Positions 6,867-60,544 of a stretch of DNA of 64,000 bases are shown piece after piece. The notes below the pieces were generated by a model. It saw nothing but the letters and a program-made list of their open reading frames with translations. It was not told the origin of the DNA and ran no database searches. The first letter of the stretch is position 1. Each line of letters begins with the position of its first letter. Source of the DNA: Auanema rhodensis (taxonomy: Eukaryota > Animalia > Nematoda); contig OZ059894.1 in the NCBI GenBank assembly GCA_964057225.1, forward strand, positions 9,424,001-9,488,000, given 5' to 3'. The position numbers and the translations under genes are program-made.

Positions 6867-12129
<5,263 letters not shown>

Positions 12130-36700: not shown

Positions 36701-37698
36701 AACATTCTTCTAAATATTAGACTTACTTAGCTAACAATTAATAAATTCTAGAAAACAACTGGAGATAACGCTAAATTAGAAGTTGACGGCTCTACTGATT
36801 CTAAGACTATCAGCATTGTTAGTGGTAACACTGAGCCAGAAGAGACTGCTGTTGATCAGGTTTGTCAGCTAATAGTCTGAGATACAATTCTCAAGCTTTT
36901 CCTTATTCTAGGAGCCAGATACTAATGAACGTTCAACTACTCTCGCTATGATTGTCGACAAAGTTTCTGGAGAAGCTACTGTTGAAATTTCTGCTTCTAC
37001 TCCAGAATCCGCTATGGAAACATCTACTTCTACTCCAGAATCCACTGGGGAAACGTCTACTTCTACTCCAGAATCCACTGGGGAAACGTCTACTTCTAAT
37101 CCTGAATCTAGTGTGGAAACAACTGGCGAGAGTTCCACTGAGGCATCCGTTAGTGAATCAACTGCTGAAATTTCTGATGTTGAGCCAGTATACTATTATG
37201 ACGATGAGCATAGCAAATCTGTAACATCTGAAAGCTCAAACAACCTCAATGTTCAAGCTGATGCTGCTTTTGCCGTCTCTGACTCTGCTCTAGCTGGACA
37301 AAAGGAAGTTTCACCAACTGAGATCACCGTCGAGAAAACAGTAGACGATTTCGAAACGACCGTAGAGCCAACTGAAGAAGATTCCGACGTTATCGTCACT
37401 GAAGTCGACTCTACCACTGAAGAGACCAGCTCAGGAGCTGAGGATGTTGAAGACGTAAGATACGAAATCTCAGAAATCAAACTAATTTCCAACATTACAG
37501 AGCTCTATGCCAACCATCATTGTTGACGACAAGAACGATATGTTAGATAGTAACCGCGTTGACGGCGGAGAAACAACGGTAAGACATGAATCAAAGCTTC
37601 ATCTCAATATGAGCCAACTGCTTTTTCAGAACGGAGTTGGATCAACCATCATCGGTTCCGTTGCTAGTTTGATATTTGCTTTGGTTCTACTCCAATAG
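33728..37698 (+). CDS. Cell-surface or secreted proteoglycan/mucin-like protein: Cys-rich (CPG4-like) N-domain, S/T/E-rich stalk, hydrophobic C-terminus (probable GPI signal)
   Basis: TTTTCAG|ATG; MFSLIVLLFPLVA/ALPVDLNDKKCTTSCMNSY...QLCN/YVKKMVICNGMC...YLCK.../...ECAKTC...SC/EKQTCFKDCL...C; EASGEEE; STSTPESTGET repeats; ends NGVGSTIIGSVASLIFALVLLQ*. The domain name is inferred from Cys spacing only. Confidence 0.8.
36990..37125 (+). repeat. 33-bp coding tandem repeat (~4 copies; STSTPESTGET)
   Basis: tctacttctactccagaatccactggggaaacg repeated with variants. Confidence 0.9.
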
Positions 37699-45812: not shown

Positions 45813-46385
45813 TTTCTTAAATAAATAAACACTAATTAAAGATATATCAACAAGTTATTCCAGAAAAATTAGCAAAAATGAATTAAATTGGAAGTTAAGA
45901 AAAAAAAAAGAAAAGTGAATGTTAAAGAAAAAACGGGCGTGATATCGGAGCGATAATGCAAGTAATGTAGATCTTTTTTTTATGAAATCGACAAGATGAA
46001 TCGAAAAACAGCCTGATAAGTGGTGGATTGGTTGAGTGTTGATGAGATAAGTAGAGTTTTCAAATACTTTTTATTATCAAAATGATCATGGTTGGATGCA
46101 TGTTAGGTGCTTTATGGTTCATGAAGACCAGTGGTTTGGGTTGAAGTGGACTGATTGCTTAACTGCTGGCAAAGATATTAATGTTGAAAGGGGGGGGCTG
46201 CTTTTAAAGATCGAAAAGCAATCTCTGAAAGTTTCAAGGGACAACTTTTGACCGGAGAAACAAAGGAAATGGTAAGTATGATGAGAAAGTGAGAGAAGAC
46301 TGTATCCACATAGCCTCGTTATGAATCAGAAGAAGACGGAGAAGAACAAGAGGAAGTAAGAGACGAATATGATGATGCAGATGTT

Positions 46386-46484
46386 GAAGAAGAAGAAGAA
46401 GAAGAAGAAGAAGAAGAAGAAGAAGAAGAAGAAGAAGAAGAAGAAGAAGAAGAAGAAGAAGAAGAAGAAGAAGAAGAAGAAGAA
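46386..46484. repeat. (GAA)33 perfect trinucleotide repeat
   Basis: Direct reading. Confidence 0.97.
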
Positions 46485-48655
46485 GGAGAAGAAGAACGAA
46501 AGGAAGAAGAATGAAATGAGAAGTAAAATAAGAAGTAGGAGAAGAAGAAACCGATTACTGAAATGATCAAAGTGATAGAAATGGTTGAAAATCGAATTCG
46601 ATGAGGTTTTGCAAAAGTGAAGTCCAAACAATTTCGGAACAGTTGACGTCAGAATGTGACGACATTTAGAGAAACAATTCATCAGAATGTCGGGAAGAAG
46701 ATATTTACTGTATATGGTTGGTGAAAGCCAAGATGAAGATAAGAAGAAGGAGACGATAAACGAATTCAAAATCAAAGGTGACGATGAAGCCAATTGCAGT
46801 TAGTTGGGGTGCATGTACGATGAAGACTGATGTCGACATAAAGACTGAGAGCGAACCAAATGAGAAAAATAGAGAGAAACCAACGAGTATTTTATTGAAC
46901 AATGATGATATGGTTTGAAGACGAGTGGCCAGGCGCTTTCGTTCCCATCTTACCCTCTAGTCACCTCGTAATCATATGGTAGAGTGATGGAAATAGAATC
47001 GAAACATACAGATAGAAAATTTCAACGGGGAGGGCTACTGCAAGTTCAGTCTTTAAAGATTTTTTCGAAAATATTCATGGTGAAGCACATGCCACAAAGC
47101 GTTAAGCTTGACAGACTGAAAGATAGTTGGGTTTGTGGGTGTTCTCTATTCGCTATGACTTCTGATACTAGCGACGTCAGGGTCGGCTGCAGCATCAGCT
47201 ACTATTACGGGCGATAGAGATGACGACAACGACGACAAAAATGGTACTGCTGTAACAGATGAAAGGAGTTTTTCTGAACATTCATGGTTTCATCGTCACA
47301 TGGACAGCTTGATTGGACGATTTTCGAAGAACAGTCGAGCAACTTTGCATCTTGTCAGGAAGTGTTGCGGACTGAAATAGGCGTTAACCATTTTCAGAAT
47401 ATAGCTGTACACTGTCGTTTCACTACTATACAATTAGATTGACAGTATCAGAAGAAACACAATAATTTATAAAAATAAAAAGTTAAATTTTTTTACTCCA
47501 GAACAGTTGGTCTTCCTTTTATAATAACGATAGCAAATTAGACCGTAGGACATGATAAAGTGCGAAAAATCTTGTTAGAGCAATTTGGAGAGATATCTAA
47601 CAACTTCTTCTTCGTTGTGCTGAATGGATTGCTGACGTAGGCTGATCACACCAACTTATCAAACTTTCATCCTTTCGGCTCTTCTTCTTGGCCTCGAATC
47701 ATACCAGTTTTAGAGATATCCAGCAAAACGATTTCGATGAGCGCTCTTCGTGGCCCCTATCTGCAACGGAAAAAAAGGGTGAAAACTATGTTTAGATGAA
47801 AGCAATGAATTATGAACCTTTAATGAAAAGAAAAACAGATCGAAGAGCAACACGGTGGTTCGTAAATAATTGAATCAATGAGTAAAAAGTGTTTAGAATG
47901 GTTGAAGTTTTCACCAAAGTCATAAACTTCTGCAATCTTTTGTGCGTTGAACTGTTGACGGTTTTGCGAAAAATGTTGGATCCTGTCGTGACACGTTCAA
48001 AGATTGAACCGAGAATGCAACAAATGTAATATGACTATCAATTTCTGATACATATATTCACTTTTTAATCCTCAAAAAGCCCTTGAAACAGTGTAACACA
48101 GTTTCTTAGTCACGAGGATGTGGCAAAAGCTGTTAAATATGAAGCTCATACACTTCTAATCTAAAAGTGCAGCACCAACAAAGACACCGAAAGTATGGTT
48201 TCGAACATTAGCCATTTGATGATTCTTTGAAATCAGTAATATCAAAAATATTTGAGCTCATTACGCTTCAGGGCGATCAAAGAATTTCTATCGCTCAGGG
48301 TCATGATAGTTCTGGCCGCACCCAAGCTATCAATAATCCCATTAGAGAAGAATTCATATCAAAGTTGTGTAGCAAAAGATCATATCTGTATCTGAACTTA
48401 AAAAGTTGATCAACAAACAAGACATAAAACTTCATATAAAAGCAAAAAATATCACATATGAACAATCACAAACTGACTTTTTCGGCAAATAAAGTCTCCT
48501 ATGAGGCAGTTTTGGGAACTGTCAGGCTTAAGAAATTAAGAGGGCATTATGAGATTATGCCTGAGAACAATTGATTAATAAGTTAAGTGAAAAATAAATT
48601 ATAAAATAGAAATATGGTAAAACTCTACATACAAGTAACTGAATAGGATATGGCA

Positions 48656-51600
48656 CTACCGATTCAATGCTTCCGTATGACAATTATTACAAGTTCGTAC
48701 TGGGTTCTTGCTGCTCGCGGTCCTAAAACTTGCGCTCAAATCACAAAATATAATAACTAATCCTACCTGACAGTCTTGTCACTACATTGGGAACAGAAAA
48801 TTAAACCACAAATACGACAGTGGTGTTTTCTAACTGTTAAGGTAAACGTCTTTCCGCAATCCGTACAGTTGACAGCAGCGGAATCATCCAACCACTTTCG
48901 TGTCGTATGCTTGGACATATCCATCTGAAACAAATACTCTGCGTGCGATCATTCAGAAGAGTTTCTCACTTGTAACGACTGATTAGCTCTTCCAAGCTCA
49001 TGCATAGCGGCCATACAATCATCAAATCTTCTTTTATTTTCAATGGATCGTTCCCGCTCGAAATCAAGATCACTTTCAGTTTTAAGACAACGCTCGATAA
49101 GAGCATTCTTCTCATCTTCCCACGACGAATACTGCTTTTGAAGTTCTGAAAAAGAAAATCATATGTTCACAAGTAAGAGATAGTTTTAAAGAAACCTAAA
49201 CTCTGAGAAGCTAGTTCTTCACTAGTTTGCTTCCACTTAGTAACATCAGCTTGTGCGGCGTCCAACTAAAAAGGATTCATTTCTATTCTATTTCTGATAA
49301 ACTTAGCTTACCTCAGACTCCAAAGATTGAATCGATCTCTTATGCTTTTGAATCGCAGAACTCATTTCTTCCTCCTTCTCAGCATAAGCAATCTCCTTTT
49401 CACTTAGACTGTTCTCCAACTTGTCAATAGCAACCCGTTGCTCAGAGATTTCCTTGTCCTTCTCACTTTGAATTTCCTTAGCTAATTTCTCGAACTGAGA
49501 ACATTTTCCTTCCAACTAGAAATTATTTTGTAATAAGTAGCAGAATATCCTAAATAAAACCTTTCGAGCATGATCAATCTTTTCTCCAAGTTCTTTTTGC
49601 ACACTTTGCAACTCCTTTGCTTGAGCTCTTATTTGCTCTTGACTTTCAGCGAGTTCTTGCTTATATGAGCCTTCTGTCTCCCGAATCTTCTTCATTTCAG
49701 AATCTTTTTCAGCTATAAACTTGGACAATTCCTCAATTTTAGATGAAAGACTCTGAATAAAAAGTAAAATATAACACAAATAAATGAAAATAAATATACA
49801 TTTCCTTCTTCTTGGAGAACATTGATGATTTGGTTAAGATCAGCTTCACGTATTTTAAACTGTTCCTCCTTTTCTCTAAGTTCTAAACAAAAGAATTTAA
49901 GAATAAATGAATTCCATGCCATAATTACCTGTCAAAACTTGATTCAATTCATCGTCTTTCATTTTAAGGTTCTCAGAGAGCTGTGTTCTAACGCTTTCCA
50001 TATCATCTAAGATATCCTTCTGACCAGCTAATTCACATTCAAAGGATGACTGCAAAAGAACAAATTTAATTCATCTTTTAACTAATCTACATACAATTCT
50101 CTCATTGAAACTGTTAGTTTCTCGATCCTTTTCAGCTAACGACGATTGCAAACGAGCCATGTTTTGCGAAATTCGGAACAAATCCTGAAACAAAATGCAT
50201 GAAAGAAAATGTGAAATTACCCAACTTCGTCTTTTTGTTCTAGTTGCGCAAGCAAATCTTTCTTTTCCAAAGCATGCTTTGCAATTGTATTGTCTAAATC
50301 CAATTGAAGTGTACAATGTCTCTCTTTAGATTCAGCTATTTCTTCTTGGTGAGTAACCAAAACAGTTTGTAATTCCTAAAATTGCAAACATAAATGGAGG
50401 AGGATCGTTAAGGATATTTTACGTTTTGTTGAGAAAGCAACCGTTCATAGCTTTCAGTATTATTAGTGCAAGAGGATTGAAGTTCAACCTTTTCTTCTTC
50501 CTAAAAGAAATTTTTCAATTTCTGTTAATCATAACAAATCGAACCAAATTCTGTATAGTCTTCCTCAATTCTTCCGATTTCTTCTCCTTATCATCTAAGG
50601 TTGTTTCCAATTCTGTCAGTCTAACCATTAGTTCGTTAATAGTGGAATCCATATTAGCAATGCGACTCTGAATGAAGTAGTACAGTTCATATTCCTTTTC
50701 AAAGTAGTTACCTCTTTGTTTTTCTTATCGTTTTCTTCCTCCTCTAACTTCTTTTTGAGCTCCGCTAGATTCGTTAGTAAATCCTGGATGGAACAGTTTA
50801 ATAAGTTTCATTATGAAGGGTAGCATTACCTCATTAGCTTCTTGGTTCTTCTCCATTTGCTTCAAGAATTCATCTTTTTTACCATTCCAATGTTCTTCTT
50901 TATCATTCATTTCTGAATACAGAAATAGAAATAAAACAAAAAACAATGAAAACCTTTAACAACAGCAGCTAATTCATCATCTTTCGTTTTCAAATCTTCG
51001 GCTAACTGAAATAGCAGCTTAAAAAAAGCAGAATAATTGCTCAATAGGGGTAGACTGTTAGTCTAAGCACAGCTAGTTCACCTCAGGGGACCCAAGCAAA
51101 GGAGAACGTTTGGATTATATAAACAGTACTAGGTAGCTATAAGCATGCAGAATACAAACCTGACTTGCTTCCGCCTTCAATTTCTCTAAACAACCGTGAG
51201 TCTCATCAAGTTTCTGCTTCAGCTCCTTTTCTGACGTACTTGCAGATTCCCTAGAAAGCTCAGAGTTCTGCAGCTGCTTCTCCTGTAATATAGGAAGCTG
51301 ATTTCAGTAAGAAATAAAAAACAAACCAAAGCCCGAGCTTTTGACTCCGCATCTTCTAAGTGCTTCACAGATTCTTCAATTCGTTTCTTAGATTCATCAA
51401 GATGAATCTCCTTCTCCCGAATGAGTCGATTCTTTTCTTCCAACGACCCATGCAACTCTTCTATCTGAGTTTTCAGCTGTTGAGCTCCAGCCTCTTTTTG
51501 GAGAACCAGTTCTTTGAGCTTATTAACCCGTTCAGCTGCTTTTGCTCTTTCTTCATCCAACTCTTTTTCCATTTCAATGAAACGTTCCGACTATAAAAGC

Positions 51601-54234
51601 AGAATAAGAATGAAATAAGGTATTAAGGTATTAAGCCATACTTTTCGACTAAGATCATTTTCTGATTCTTTAAGGTTTCGACGTAATTCTTCAAGATCAG
51701 ATTCAGTTTTCTGAACCTTTTCATTGATGGACTTCTCCTTTTCTCTATGCTTCTTTTCGATATCCTCAATCTTTGACGAATGCTCTTCTTTCTTAAAATC
51801 AATTATGAATATGTTTTATTCTTTTAGAAACATACGATTTCTTTGATTGAAGTGGCTAAAAATGAGATCTCTTCTGATAATCGTTGCTTCTCCGTTGTTA
51901 GTTGATCAATCATCATTTTCGCTCCTCCTTCCCCTTCCACAATCTAATTAATGGATAATACAATTGACAAAACTGTTCGAGATTCGCCCACCTTATCAGC
52001 TAAGTTTTTCGTATTTGATTCCAATGAGACAATCTGCTTGGTCAAACCTTCAGAAGTGGCAACTAACTCAGAACGTTCACTTTCTGATTTGAATAGTAAG
52101 AAAATGAATAAACAAACAGTTCTAATACCTAATTTCTCCAATTTCCGTCTGCATTCTTCTATTTCACCTTGGACGGAATGCAACTGATCATCCTTCGACT
52201 GTAGAGCAGAATTCTGAAAATATCCATTCAATGGGCAAAGTAAAATATAAATATTTGCCTTTTCATTAATAAGTGATCGTTCTTGTTCCAACATAGACCC
52301 AAGAGATGCAACTTCATTAGTCAAATCCATATTAGATAATTCCAACTTAAGAAACCGGATCAATTTGTTACAACGTTCCTGATTACTTACGCTCTTTATC
52401 ACTTCCATTTGTTTTTGTTGCTTTTCCTCAAACCCGCTCAGGTCAGCATCATATTTCTTCTTGTCTTCAATCATCTAATACAGAAAAAGGTTAATAACAT
52501 TGTATGAACTATCTACAACCTTCTGCAATGTTTCTTCTAGCTTCGACAGTTTGAGCATATTTTTTTCATTTAATTCATGAGAATCATCAATTTCTTTGGA
52601 TCCTTTGTTAACCACTTCTTCGAGCTGCTTTATTTTCTCTTGGCATCGAGTAAGTTCAACCACGTTAGCGTCCAATCTTAATTTGTTTGGGTAAAATATA
52701 TTATTGACTTAATTAACACCTTGATTGGAGCTCAAGAATACGGTTTTCACGCTCAGTGACCATTTCTTGAGCAGAAGTCAATTCTTTCTTAATATTCTCA
52801 TATTGTGTTCTATTATCATCCAACTGATTATTGAGGCCTTCTATGATGGAATTACTTCTAGAAATCAAAAATTAATAGAATTTACTATCGATACCCATAC
52901 TCAGAAGAATTTTGAGATTTCTCAGTCAGCTGCTTCTTCAGGTTTTCTAAGACACAGTTCTCCCTGAAATAAATATAATTCAATAACCATATTTCAATAT
53001 ATGATACCGTTCTCGTTCCATATTCAAATGCCGGATAGAAGTTCTGTGTTCTTCAATTTCAACATCTTTTTGTTGAGCAATATCATCCATCAATTTTTGA
53101 GCATTAACCAATTCAGTTCTTAATACAGCCACATCGTCTTCACTCGGTCTAATAATAAAACATTAATTTAATTTTACAAATTAATGCCAACCTTTGATCA
53201 AGAGTTTTATTTAATCGCTCTACTTCTTGGTTCAATCGATCGCATTCCACCTCACTATTTTTGCTTTTCTCATTCAGCACATCTCTTTCATTCTGTAAAT
53301 TATGATTTATTTCCGATAAACGAGCGATTGAAACTTTGAAAGATTCATTTTCATCCATCAATTCTCGGATCTGCTGGCTTTGTTGCTTTAATTTAGCCAT
53401 TATGTCATTGCGTTCACGAGACATATTTTCCAGTGATCTTTTGGCCTGCGTTGACTCTTTTTCAAACTCTAACATTCTTTGAGTAACTGAATAATGAAAG
53501 ATACTAAAAAAATATAGAAATACTATGTACCCATGCTTTTTCCTGCTTCAAGGACTTGAATTTGTTGCATAAGATAAGGAACTTCTTCTGTTGGGACATC
53601 TGTTGCCTGTGCAACAACTCCTTGAATTCTGTCCAACTCTTCCTGAACATTGTTTTTAATGAACTGAAGAGAATGATAAGTTATACCTTCAGTCTCAAAG
53701 AGAATGTTTTTTCTTCCTTGAGTTGCAGTTTGAGTTCATCAATCTCATGTTCTTTAGTTCGAAATGCTGGAGGGGATGTTGGTGCACCTACATGAAAACT
53801 TTTACAAAACACATTATATAATATTTCTTACTATTCAGAGAATTGTTAAAATTGGGATTTTCAAGGAAAGATGGAGAACTCTAGAAAACAAATGTTATCT
53901 GTAATTTTTTATATTAAATTTCCTTACTGCATTATTATGTTCACGATCAAAATGAGACGATAACTGATCAGGCGAACCAAAATGTGTCATGCAAATAGGG
54001 CATAGGAAGCCTTCAATTTCACCATCCTAGAAAATAAACAACTAAATAAAATAGGAATTGAAACAATAACCTCATTTGGTTCAGGCAGAAATGATTCATC
54101 TCGTGCGCTTCTATCGCTCACCGGAGATAGTACACCAGGAAGCTGAAAGAGAGATTAAATAAATATATAAAACAAATCCAAATAAGAACCTCGTTTGCCA
54201 CCTGGGAAACTTGTGCTTTTAACCTTTTCAGCAT
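48656..54234 (-). CDS. eea-1: Early endosome antigen 1 (C2H2 zinc finger, long coiled coil, FYVE)
   Basis: N-terminal EGFLCPICMTHF...HFDREH; multi-exon coiled coil; C-terminal KWLDDSAAVNCTDCGKTFTLTVRKHHCRICGLIFCSQCS...PVRTCNNC. Confidence 0.95.
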
Positions 54235-55885: not shown

Positions 55886-56706
55886 CAGATTTGGTGAAAA
55901 TACGTCAACTTCGAAGAAGTCGTGTGTTGATCGAACAAGAGTTTAAGATAACTCTCTAGAGAAGGAAAGATAAAGAGTCTGACTATATGAGACGCTGCTC
56001 AAACCGTGACTATAAGCGAACTCCACCACTAACTGACCAACCGAAATCATTGAATAAACAAAGTGAACATAGTGTAAACAATGTATTCATTTGCACTGAA
56101 CTCTGTACATCATCAATTCAACTTTTCCTCATTTCCTATGAGAGTATCTTCATAAAAATTGTGATCAATACCAAATTGAAAGGTTCATCTTGAATTCCTT
56201 ATGCAGATTTTCGTTATCAATACTCTGTGACCTTTGTTTTTCTTACTTTTAATTGGGGGCATGTTTTTTTTTTCATTTTAACAGTAAACGACCTCTCGTG
56301 CAACGTGTAGGTCATCTCACACTCGTAATTATTATCAGCGTTTTTTCATTCTTATGACCTAGATCTGAACTTAGAAAATGGAAGATGGAATAAAGAATAG
56401 TCTAAGATCAAAGCTTTTTCTGGTGTTTGATAAATCGCAACCCTGTGAAGTTTCAGACAGACAGTAGAATCCGGAGTCGGAGATATTTCGAACTAATGAA
56501 GAGGATTTTGCAAAATGAGAACGATGTGCTAAGAAGCGTAAAAGAAAAAAGAAAAGCAAGACAACCCCGGAAAAAGGAAAACTTGAACATCGAGAGTGAA
56601 TAGCATGCGGTAGGAGAGAGGGCGGGGGGAGGAGTTCGTAAGGATGAACAACGGGTCTGGACCTGATCTAGATGGATCTTAGTTGCCAACTACCTTCGAT
56701 TAGGGG

Positions 56707-56713
56707 TATATAA
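56707..56713 (+). promoter_or_regulatory. TATA box of cationic peptide gene 1 (equivalents at ~57567 and ~58778)
   Basis: GTATATAAG ~65 nt upstream of the ATG. GTATAAAT and CTATATAAG lie ~45-50 nt upstream of the next two genes. Confidence 0.7.
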
Positions 56714-56774
56714 GGCTGATCGAAATGCTTAGAAGACAGAACCAAATCGGCTTCGTCTACTCTTCTAATTCACC

Positions 56775-57133
56775 ATGAAATTCATCGCTATCTGCCTCAT
56801 CTTCGCCCTCATCCTCACCATCTTCGCCGGAGTCAGCGAGGCCAAGCCACACCACGGAAAGCACGCCGCCGCTAGTGAGTTTCAGCCTATTACTACTTCT
56901 TCTCCTTCTACTTCTTCTGCATCGACTTTTACAAAACATCTAAAAGCATTTAATAATTTCAACTCATAATCATCTTTCCAGGACGCCACGCTGCCGTCAA
57001 GGCCCACAGCGGAAACCACGCCGCCCCACACCGCAGAGCCGCTGCCAAGCACGCTGGAAAGCCAAAGCACGCCAGAAAGCCAAAGCACGCCAGAAAGGCC
57101 TCCAAGAAGGCTGCTCCAAAGAAGCACCACTAA
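56775..57133 (+). CDS. Secreted Lys/His/Ala-rich cationic peptide (83-aa precursor)
   Basis: Two exons, phase-1 intron: MKFIAICLIFALILTIFAGVSEA-KPHHGKHAAARRHAAVKAHSGNHAAPHRRAAAKHAGKPKHARKPKHARKASKKAAPKKHH*. Strong C-ending codon bias; AATAAA at ~57204. Confidence 0.88.
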
Positions 57134-57615
57134 ACAGTTACCAACCAACCTAACTTATTTATCTGAGCATTTTTTTCGTCATTCAATGGCTTAAAGAGTT
57201 TCCAATAAACATATTTATGACATCCAATTGTTCATTTACATCGAAATCAATCGAAATACAGCAACACAAGCAATATCATTCAGATATATTTGAAAATTTC
57301 TTTTTCAAATTATCTATTCTACGAACAATGGATGCACGACCAGCATCAACCTTTTCTCACAAAGACTTCTCAGAAAGACAGAGAAACACAGCATGGATAG
57401 TCTTCACAACAGGAAAATAATTTTAAAATTCTTTAAAACTTTTAAAAGCGTCATTGGCTTCTTCTCTTCTGTGTAAAATTTGATTCAAAAGGTTAAAAAA
57501 ACGATAAGAAACGGGTTGTTTACATATAGTTCGCCCAAGAACGACCCGTAATGTGTAGATCACCAGTATAAATACGTACTAAGTCAGAAGTTACAACAGC
57601 TTCTATCAGATCATC

Positions 57616-58017
57616 ATGAAATTATTCGGAACTATCAGCCTTTTGGTTATTCTCATCCTCGCTCTTGCTATTGGTAAGATTTTTAGATTTTCAATTTCGA
57701 CTTCAACAACGCTTAGTTGACCTGAAAAGACAATATTTCTCAAAAAAAATGATCTTGAAAAAGAGAGAAAGATTTAGTCGAATCATATTCATGTTATCTA
57801 AGATTCAAATCACATTTCAGACACAGCTGAAGCAGTCCGAGTTCCAAAACCAATTCGTAATGCACCACGTAAGTGATAAAATTTATTTTATATCCTTTAT
57901 TCTTCTAAATTCTATTTTAATGGTTTGATTCTTATAGGCCAGGCAGCAGCACGTGTTCAGAAACAAAGTCGTACGGTCAAATCGAATGCACGTCGTGTAA
58001 CCAATCGTCTTGGATAA
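57616..58017 (+). CDS. Secreted Arg-rich cationic peptide (61-aa precursor)
   Basis: Three exons, phase-1 introns: MKLFGTISLLVILILALAIDTAEA-VRVPKPIRNAPRQAAARVQKQSRTVKSNARRVTNRLG*. Confidence 0.82.
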
Positions 58018-58821
58018 ATTTGAAATGAAATGAAATAATTGATTCATCGATGTAAACAAATTCAATTTATTTTGTATATTATTACTTTCTTGTAATTACA
58101 TTTTGGAAATAAACGATTTAAACCGTGATATCACGTTGTATCATTGATTGTAAACCTATACCGAATTGCATGAAAACGGAGCGCCGAGTTGGCCCGCATA
58201 CTACTGACCTCACAGCGGAATAGGAATGACATCATGTTGAAACAGCTTATCTATAAATGTTTTATCTGTTATAGCATCTTGAAAATTCAAATTTTCCCTC
58301 CCAAAAAAATTATTTCAAATTTCAATTGAGATCACTGTTCTTGTTCTGTGACTTCTTGAGATTTCCTGTTTCTAATAAGGTTTTATGGATCATTATGAAA
58401 AAGGAAAATCGAAAAATATCGGAGAGATTTCGAAGAAAATCAGGGACTTCGATGACAATTCAGCATTTTTCGATCAGAAAGATTGAACCCTTTAAACTAC
58501 TGGTTGCAAGCCAGACCGAGAAAAACGTGGTTGATTGAGAAGTCGTGGTGATGAAGATCTTTAACCTTATAAAGCTTTGTATCAAAAATGATGAAAATCA
58601 GAGATCATTGTTTGTTAGCGAAGTAGAAACAGATCATCTATTTCTTCATTAGCAAAAGAACAAAACCATATCATTTCAACTTTGGTTCCATTTGTTCTTC
58701 TAGCTGATCATCCTATTATTCGCTGAATGACTTGTGATAAAGCTCAACTTTGGGTGGGGCTTCTGGGTTTCGAGTCCTATATAAGAAAAATCCTATCCAG
58801 TAGATTCTAACACAATCAAAA

Positions 58822-59162
58822 ATGAAACTCCTTGCTTGCATTCTCATCCTCGTTGTCGTATTCGCTGCCCTTACAGGTTAGAGTCGAAATATCAAGTTGT
58901 TTCTGTCTAACTGTTAGATTGCAGAAGCCAAGAAATACGGAAAGCACGGAAGATACGGAAGACACAGCTCATCAAGCCATCATCATTTCGGAAGAAGAGG
59001 TACGATTTCAAGAAAATTTTCTACCAGTTAAACAAGTTTTTTTTATTACCAGGTCCACCATCTCGAGGACATTACCATTCTCTTCCACGTGGCGGATATC
59101 ACGGACCATCCCGCGGAGGACACTATCATGCTCCACCACGCGGATTCCACCATTTCGGTTAA
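58822..59162 (+). CDS. Secreted His/Gly/Arg-rich cationic peptide (79-aa precursor)
   Basis: Three exons, phase-1 introns: MKLLACILILVVVFAALTEA-KKYGKHGRYGRHSSSSHHHFGRRGPPSRGHYHSLPRGGYHGPSRGGHYHAPPRGFHHFG*. Confidence 0.85.
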
Positions 59163-60544
59163 AACTAAAGAAATAACGGCTTAAAATCAAAATATATAGA
59201 TTTATATAATTAACTTTGAATTATGTTTTAAGGTTAATGCTTTATACATATATACATAATGGTCAATTTTAAAATTTATAAAGTACGTGCTACCTCTATA
59301 ATATCCGAAGACAACTTTTTCTATTTGCATGTGTGTCATATATATAAAAAATAAAAGATTTATTATAATAAAACAATATTTCTATATATCTATTTGATAT
59401 ATATCAATGTAAAATGTAACATATTATATAAAAAATAGTTAATAGAAACCATTTTCAATCGCCTGTTATGGTTGAAACAAGTTTTATAACTTCATTTTCA
59501 ATGAAAAGGTTTAATGAACAATTTTCAATGAAAATTTGTCTGAGAGAAAATTATAGAAAAAAAAAACGTTGAAATCAGTGAAAAAACAGAATTCTGCTGA
59601 GCGTCATGGCTATGTTCATCAATCTTTTTGAATTTTTTTTTGGTGGGTGGAGAAGGTGAGATGGGACGAAACAATGAAAATGGAAACATTTTCATTGTTC
59701 CATATGGTGAAGTAACTTAACAGATATTGGAATTTCTTAAAGTTATTTGAAGTAATAAACATCCAATGATTGAGTTATAGAAAAGAAAATGAAGATCTAA
59801 CTAGTCGGATTACAAGATGACTTTGGTAGATTCCGAAACATCATGTTAAAACGGGAAAAAGCTGCCATGTAAACAGGAAAACACGATAATCATCGTTTGT
59901 CTGTTAGCTAGAACGATCCGATAGCCATAGGTCATAGGTATAACCAATTGAAAACAACAATCATGAAAGATTATTGGAAAAAAAGTTGGAAAAGTTGGTC
60001 AAGTTGTAGATATTACATCACACAATTCAAAATATTAAATCAATAATTTGTGATTAAAAGATAAATTGCATCGCTTGGCAAGAAGGCTTTTTCGCCTTTC
60101 GACTGCATATGCATGTCGTTTATGATGTCGAATTCATTTAATCTATTCCTGTTTGGACGATCCGTTATCGCTTTTACTCTTTCCTTGAACATTAGCATCT
60201 CTTTTTCTCTCTTTCCCTCTGTTTATACCTCTTTATTTCCCTTTCTCTCTTCTGTAATCTCTTATTCTAACTAACCTCTACCTCTCTCTATCATCTCACC
60301 AAACTACTCTCACCTCTCTATATATGTCTTGTAATTTCTTTTTTCCCCTTCTATCGTTCTGAAACTCTCTCTCTGTACACTTGTCAATCGTATTTCCCAT
60401 CATACAGCTTAGTTTTCAACAGCCTTCTAGCCTAATCACCGATTGACGATTTCATCTTCTAAGCTTCATAATAGCTTTCTCTTTTGAATTCTTTCATCTC
60501 CGTTCAGAATTTCTGCCTCAAATAGAACACTAACTCCAGATATA

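Follow-up and report, generated by a model that had tools for sequence, protein, structure and literature searches.

Three mini-genes lie side by side on the + strand of a 64,000-nucleotide stretch of contig OZ059894.1 (positions 9,424,001 to 9,488,000 of assembly GCA_964057225.1) from Auanema rhodense, entered in GenBank as Auanema rhodensis, a free-living nematode with three sexes (2026 preprint). We refer to this whole stretch of 64 kb as the window, and all positions are counted from its first letter. The window has a background GC content of ~34%, its genes are intron-rich, and the trio consists of G1 (56775-57133), G2 (57616-58017) and G3 (58822-59162). An initial annotation of this DNA had described three adjacent genes on the same strand, each with a TATA box, a signal peptide ending in xEA and only phase-1 introns. 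We rebuilt the models by reading the DNA from 56000 to 60000, locating starts, splice sites and stops by script, and translating each exon separately, and this reproduced the description exactly. Residue counts over the exons also confirmed the lengths given for the mature peptides (60, 37 and 59 aa) and the absence of Asp, Glu and Cys from them. As had been remarked as well, a list of open reading frames (ORFs) does not capture the trio, as G1 and G2 are truncated in it and G3 appears in the wrong frame.

G1 comprises 83 codons in two exons. Its TATA box (TATATAA, 56707-56713) lies 68 nt upstream of the ATG, and exon 1 (56775-56874) encodes a predicted signal peptide of 23 residues that ends in SEA (56775-56843), the first 10 residues of the mature peptide, and the first base of a split Arg codon. 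The intron (56875-56981; 107 nt, GTGAGT..TTTCCAG, phase 1) has a GC content of 0.33, and is followed by exon 2 (56982-57133; GC 0.62), which encodes a tail rich in His, Lys and Ala that ends at a TAA stop. Within this exon, an 18-nt unit is repeated in tandem (57047-57097, 2.8 copies) and encodes K-H-A-R/G-K-P units. A poly(A) signal (AATAAA, 57204-57209) is found 71 nt past the stop. On the opposite strand, an 88-aa antisense ORF (56882-57148) runs over exon 2. It arises incidentally from the repetitive codons of G1 with their high GC content, and a prokaryote-style gene caller could choose it over the true gene.

The other two genes have three exons each. In G2 (61 codons, leader of 24 residues, mature part of 37), the TATA box (TATAAAT, 57567-57573) is located 49 nt upstream of the ATG, exon 1 (57616-57673) carries the hydrophobic core of the signal peptide and ends in phase 1, and exon 2 (57821-57868) contains the leader end (..TAEA, up to 57834) and mature residues 1-11, which are rich in Pro, Arg and Lys. 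Exon 3 (57938-58017) encodes an Arg-rich tail with N-R-L-G as its C-terminus, and AATAAA follows 91 nt after the stop (58108-58113). In G3 (79 codons, leader of 20 residues, mature part of 59), the TATA box (TATATAA, 58778-58784) lies 44 nt before the ATG, and exon 1 (58822-58876) again holds the hydrophobic core and ends in phase 1. Exon 2 (58925-58999), which includes a 9-nt repeat (58935-58962), encodes the end of the leader (up to 58929), K-K and a Gly/His/Tyr/Arg-rich stretch that runs to HHHF-G-R-R, and exon 3 (59053-59162) encodes a tail rich in Gly, His, Tyr, Pro and Arg with F-H-H-F-G as its C-terminus. The first AATAAA downstream of G3 occurs at 59350-59355, 188 nt past the stop, and a TATAAA variant at +115, either of which is a candidate poly(A) signal. 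All five introns of the trio are GT..AG introns in phase 1, with lengths of 48-147 nt. The signal peptides were judged by a crude test of the n-, h- and c-regions and the -3/-1 rule. By this rule-based assessment, cleavage after SEA, AEA and TEA in G1, G2 and G3, respectively, is possible, and so is earlier cleavage after GVS, ALA and VFA, which would leave one or two acidic residues at the mature N-terminus.

Several features indicate that these models describe genes. The exons of the trio have a GC content of 0.38-0.62, compared to 0.19-0.35 for the introns and 0.21-0.33 for the 3' flanks, and the odd amino acid composition of each exon is carried on by the next exon in the predicted frame only, so that G1 stays rich in His, Lys and Ala, G2 in Arg and Lys, and G3 in Gly, His, Tyr and Arg. 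The codon use of G1 is extreme (AAG 13/14, CAC 12/12), with a GC content at third codon positions (GC3) of 0.75. Stop-free pieces of actin genes from the same genome have a GC3 of 0.47 and favour C-ending codons for Lys, Phe, Ile, Tyr and Thr, without such a preference for His (CAT 6, CAC 5) or Ala (GCT 19, GCC 5), and against these pieces the bias of G1 is compatible with high expression. The bias of G2 is weak (frequency of optimal codons 0.48, GC3 0.28), and two donor sites of G3, GTTAGA and GTACGA, depart from the consensus. When both strands of the window were scanned with crude criteria, 12 signal-peptide-like ATG starts emerged, and only four of them have a TATA box at a distance of at most 120 nt. 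Of these four, three belong to the trio and one to another secreted-looking gene at 7.5-8.0 kb; within the window, a signal peptide combined with a TATA box is uncommon and a mark of secreted genes. Taken together, we consider it very probable that G1 is a real gene, and hardly less so for G3, and we regard G2 as probably real. The expression, secretion, cleavage sites and any activity of the trio are what we infer from these models.

Counting Lys and Arg, the mature peptides carry charges of +19 (G1), +11 (G2) and +11 (G3), without a single Asp, Glu or Cys. G1 is composed mainly of Ala (17), Lys (13), His (12), Arg (6) and Pro (5), with only 1 large hydrophobic residue. G2 contains 8 Arg, 3 Lys, 5 Val, 5 Ala and 3 Pro, no His, and 7 large hydrophobic residues, and G3 contains 13 Gly, 12 His, 8 Arg, 7 Ser, 6 Pro, 5 Tyr, 3 Lys and 3 Phe, with 4 large hydrophobic residues. 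Gly accounts for 5% of the mature part of G1 (3/60), 3% of G2 (1/37) and 22% of G3 (13/59). In both G1 and G3, the 12 His within 59-60 residues show repeated H-A-A and H-H spacings, and at pH 5 they would raise the charge from ~+19 to ~+30 in G1 and from ~+11 to ~+22 in G3. Two copies of the motif HHF-G are present in G3, the first ahead of R-R and the second ahead of the stop, and they contain all three Phe residues of the mature part. K-K follows the leader of G3, and in G2, which ends in R-L-G-stop, an R-R pair stands six residues ahead of the last Gly. The features of the trio that stand out most are the abundance of His and the pair of HHF-Gly sites. AlphaFold, run without an alignment, predicted two short helices followed by coil for exon 2 of G1 (predicted local distance difference test score, pLDDT, 73) and coil throughout for exon 3 of G3 (pLDDT 70).

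We searched for relatives with the exons taken apart rather than as joined precursors, which lowers sensitivity, and at query lengths of 25-49 residues none but close relatives could be detected; 'orphan' is used here for a gene without a close relative in the collections searched. Five exon pieces compared to Pfam at E values up to 10 yielded nothing but a chance match of a leader to DUF2512 (E 0.22), and three exons had no match among PDB sequences at E values up to 10. A relationship of these exons to a known structural family, which would have spoken against the initial annotation, did not emerge from either collection. Word searches of a set of 5.8 billion proteins were blank for exon 3 of G3, exon 2 of G1 and exon 3 of G2; these exons were sent within their stop-free open frames, which brings full-length kin inside the length range. 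When exon 3 of G3 was run through a full HMMER search against 1.84 billion representatives, three matches were returned, all of which were rejected on reading as unrelated tandem-repeat translations. These spurious matches reach an E value of 2.5e-14 by summing many weak stretches, a trap for short low-complexity queries. The language-model search of the ESM Atlas gave no neighbour for G3, and for exon 2 of G1 the only neighbours were bacterial Asr clusters, with a score of 0.75 that is within the range of shuffled proteins. A bacterial origin of G1 was considered as well and is excluded by its intron, TATA box and AATAAA, and by the absence of a match to a hidden Markov model (HMM). Metagenome scans with G1 and G3 did not reveal a relative, and in the genome itself (180,911,798 bases in 112 contigs) the 2.5-kb DNA of the trio and four exon pieces match only themselves. 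Further family members were found neither in the window nor in the 10 kb past each end, and the three genes are single-copy. Within the limits of short exon queries, this lack of relatives is compatible with the lineage-specific origin that had been suggested for the trio.

The idea that a conserved signal region marks the three genes as one family did not hold up. The leader exon of G1 could not be aligned to the leader of G2 or G3, and in the genome it matched only itself. The leaders of G2 and G3 share 8 of 17 positions, which is little above the 5 of 17 shared (by eye) between the G2 leader and that of an unrelated cystatin in the window. The layout differs too: G1 has two exons with the intron 3' of the cleavage site, and G2 and G3 consist of three exons each, their first intron falls one or four codons short of the presumed site of cleavage, and Gly is the last residue of both. 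What the trio has in common, phase-1 introns only and the x-E-A leader end, was noticed after the fact and is at most suggestive. Phase-1 introns are common near signal-peptide cleavage sites. An old duplication that gave rise to G2 and G3 is possible, and G1 may merely be a neighbour. A single paralogous family of three is not supported by the leaders, the promoters or the exon searches.

How do these peptides compare with known systems? Glycine-rich secreted peptides (GRSPs), among them NLP-24 to -33, CNC and FIP/FIPR, are likewise small, Cys-free, secreted and low in complexity, and are encoded by short TATA-type genes that often adjoin each other. The rule used by Irvine et al. 2023 asks for a signal peptide, a precursor of at most 200 aa, more than 17% Gly in the mature part, and a C. 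elegans GRSP among the top BLAST matches. All three precursors have a signal peptide by our crude test and are short enough (83, 61 and 79 codons), and only G3, with 22% Gly, exceeds the Gly threshold. A known GRSP was not among the matches of G3 when its 35-aa exon 3 was used as query, as the word search was blank and HMMER gave only the spurious repeats. On composition, G3 falls inside the GRSP group, at the edge of a known and loosely defined set of peptides. It lacks YGGYG and GGYGG repeats, and His (20%) and Arg dominate alongside Gly, whereas G1 and G2 fall outside the rule and the trio are not mutual paralogues. The translations of exons 2 and 3 of G3 contain no NLP-29/CNC-type YGGYG or GGYGG repeat, no YGG and a single GGY, and with 0 Cys the three mature parts lack the Cys framework found in peptides of the ABF/CS-alpha-beta type, in nemapores, diapausins and macins, so that both absences described in the initial annotation were borne out. 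That annotation had passed over the GRSP composition of G3, the amidation-type ends of G3 and G2, and the precedent of FIPR peptides as cuticle components. None of the five recognised groups of nematode antimicrobial peptides (AMPs) accommodates G1 or G2.

There is also a likeness in make-up to the histatins of human saliva, which are short, secreted, Cys-free and unstructured peptides in which His, Lys, Arg, Gly and Tyr abound. Histatins act in a non-lytic manner and their His residues confer sensitivity to pH and metals, and their make-up is much like that of exon 2 of G3 and of G1. However, histatins are a vertebrate family for which common descent is not possible, they contain some Asp and Glu, and the likeness is one of composition only.

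Our preferred reading, to which we assign a probability of about 0.38, is that the trio are three separate, single-copy, TATA-driven mini-genes whose products are secreted polycations that bind polyanionic targets outside the cell without lysing them. As Cys-free, acid-free and intrinsically disordered polycations, the peptides would attach by charge to polyanionic surfaces, of which the envelopes of microbes in the gut lumen or on the surface of the body are the most plausible; this worm feeds on bacteria, and the microbes that it ingests or carries are the most plausible targets. The peptides would act without lysis, as do histatins or the nematode GRSPs, for which tested members are reported to act without permeabilising membranes. 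In G1 and G3, with their many His residues, the charge would approximately double under acid conditions and sites for metals would become available, and His would act as a switch that responds to pH and metals; that His adds charge when the pH is low has been described as a principle of AMPs, for histatins and nematode caenopores. A putative role of the trio in fighting germs is plausible. A bolder extension, that G1 and G3 found a class of host-defence peptides outside the five recognised nematode groups, namely linear, Cys-free, non-amphipathic and His-switched polycations with a charge that about doubles in an acid gut lumen, and that G3 is also cut into two His-His-Phe-amides, we consider rather improbable.

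Several observations weigh against this extracellular, charge-driven binding. The mean hydrophobicity of the mature exons is only -0.12 to -0.55, and for none of them does the helical hydrophobic moment exceed the range of its own shuffles, so that the commonest AMP design, the amphipathic helix, is absent. This includes the cecropin type, as exon 3 of G3 is modelled as coil and exon 2 of G1 as two short helices only. On these calculations and models, the peptides are predicted to be disordered hydrophilic polycations and not amphipathic, membrane-lytic helices. In addition, the 400-nt promoters of the trio have no common word of at least 8 nt and their GATA sites are at background level, so nothing indicates joint immune regulation. 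The codon bias of G1 may partly stem from the amplified 18-nt unit, and small, low-complexity secreted nematode peptides can be parts of a matrix instead.

The last point leads to the alternative that survives best, which we hold to be unlikely but well within reason: the peptides could be building blocks of a matrix, such as the pharyngeal or body cuticle, the surface coat or the eggshell, held in place by charge, His-metal bridges or Tyr cross-links. Small, secreted, disordered and low-complexity peptides under TATA promoters suit such a function, as does the composition of G3, with its 13 Gly, 12 His and 5 Tyr. There is also a precedent, since the short secreted low-complexity peptides FIPR-4 and NSPB-12 localise to the pharyngeal cuticle of C. 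elegans (eLife 2022), and some FIPR-type peptides had first been named infection-related or taken for AMPs before they were found there (eLife 2022). Like the trio, the FIPR and NSPB peptides are short, secreted, low in complexity and restricted to nematodes, but they have other residue biases and form multi-copy families with a conserved consensus, whereas the genes studied here are single-copy and show no sequence similarity to any such family in the Pfam, word and HMMER searches. Moreover, G1 and G2 are nearly devoid of Gly, Tyr, Gln and Cys of the kind used by those families.

The ends of G3, and perhaps of G2, could point to a different function, namely that of precursors of processed, neuropeptide-like signalling peptides with an amidated C-terminus. 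Convertase cleavage at K-K and G-R-R, together with the terminal Gly, would release two peptides from G3 that both end in His-His-Phe-amide, and the product of G2 would end in Asn-Arg-Leu-amide. The placement of HHF-G before R-R and before the stop, with all mature Phe of G3 in these two motifs, the K-K behind its leader, and the R-L-G end of G2 with R-R six residues before the terminal Gly are all what such processing would use. Against this, acidic spacer peptides are missing, the motif is present in two copies only, the second product of G3 would comprise 35 low-complexity residues, and G1 has no such end. The codon use of G1, and partly that of G3, suggests bulk expression rather than expression in a few neurons, and relatives were not found. 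We therefore regard this function as improbable.

A slightly smaller chance, in our estimate, is that one or more of the models, G2 foremost, are nonfunctional, either because an ATG, a hydrophobic run and splice-like sites coincide by chance, or because the gene is dying or young and untranslated. Word searches did not find a public protein that matches any exon, not even an identical product of annotation or transcript assembly, and the weak codon bias of G2 and the off-consensus donors of G3 fit this possibility too. Nevertheless, chance would have to account for three adjoining models, each with a TATA box, a leader, clean GT-AG phase-1 introns and a downstream AATAAA, with intron sizes typical for nematodes and matching exon compositions, and the codon bias of G1 is hard to obtain without selection or expression.

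Least probable of all is that G1 and G3 are secreted His-rich binders or buffers of metals (Zn, Ni, Cu) or haem, or Asr-like acid-stress polycations of a chaperone type: the 12 His per 59-60 mature residues with their H-A-A and H-H spacings are suitable for this, and the Asr clusters, which are exported, disordered polycations rich in Lys, His, Ala and Pro, were the only language-model neighbours of exon 2 of G1, but their score is at chance level, no match to the Pfam family Asr (PF06392) was obtained at E values up to 10, G2 lacks His, and the heavy load of Lys and Arg is not needed to bind metal.

Elsewhere in the window, the fourth gene with a signal peptide and a TATA box (7476-8055, + strand) lies 49 kb from the trio. 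It is a spliced, secreted low-complexity gene with a leader that is split by an intron, and encodes a very Tyr-rich stretch that ends in Y-Y-G-K-R, an amidation- or dibasic-type site, followed by a Gln/Pro-rich repeat (QGQPQ..LQPQ), and it resembles a precursor of the neuropeptide-like or GRSP type. The next gene upstream of the trio is a multi-exon coiled-coil gene on the - strand (51219-53650) with Glu/Lys/Leu-rich, heptad-like exons, and in the 4.8 kb downstream of G3 there is no evident exon. Further away, a 192-aa open frame on the + strand (36948-37526) contains Ser/Thr/Glu-rich repeats of T-S-T-S-T-P-E-S-type units and looks like a mucin-like exon, and a homopolymer tract of ~100-150 nt at ~46326-46793, which appears as a run of ~50 Phe in a - strand ORF, lies beside a spike in GC skew at 46-48 kb. 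From Rfam, a single match was obtained in the window, a transfer RNA gene (10501-10572, + strand; 67.7 bits).

Small secreted peptides specific to one lineage are numerous in nematode genomes, and for this reason the practical weight of the locus, with its putative roles, is modest. It does serve as an example of how very small, spliced genes for secreted products escape gene callers. The defence repertoire of nematodes is at present defined by five groups that were found mainly by homology, an approach that by design cannot find orphans like the trio. If the trio is expressed and active, His-rich peptides that are based on neither glycine nor cysteine would join this repertoire.

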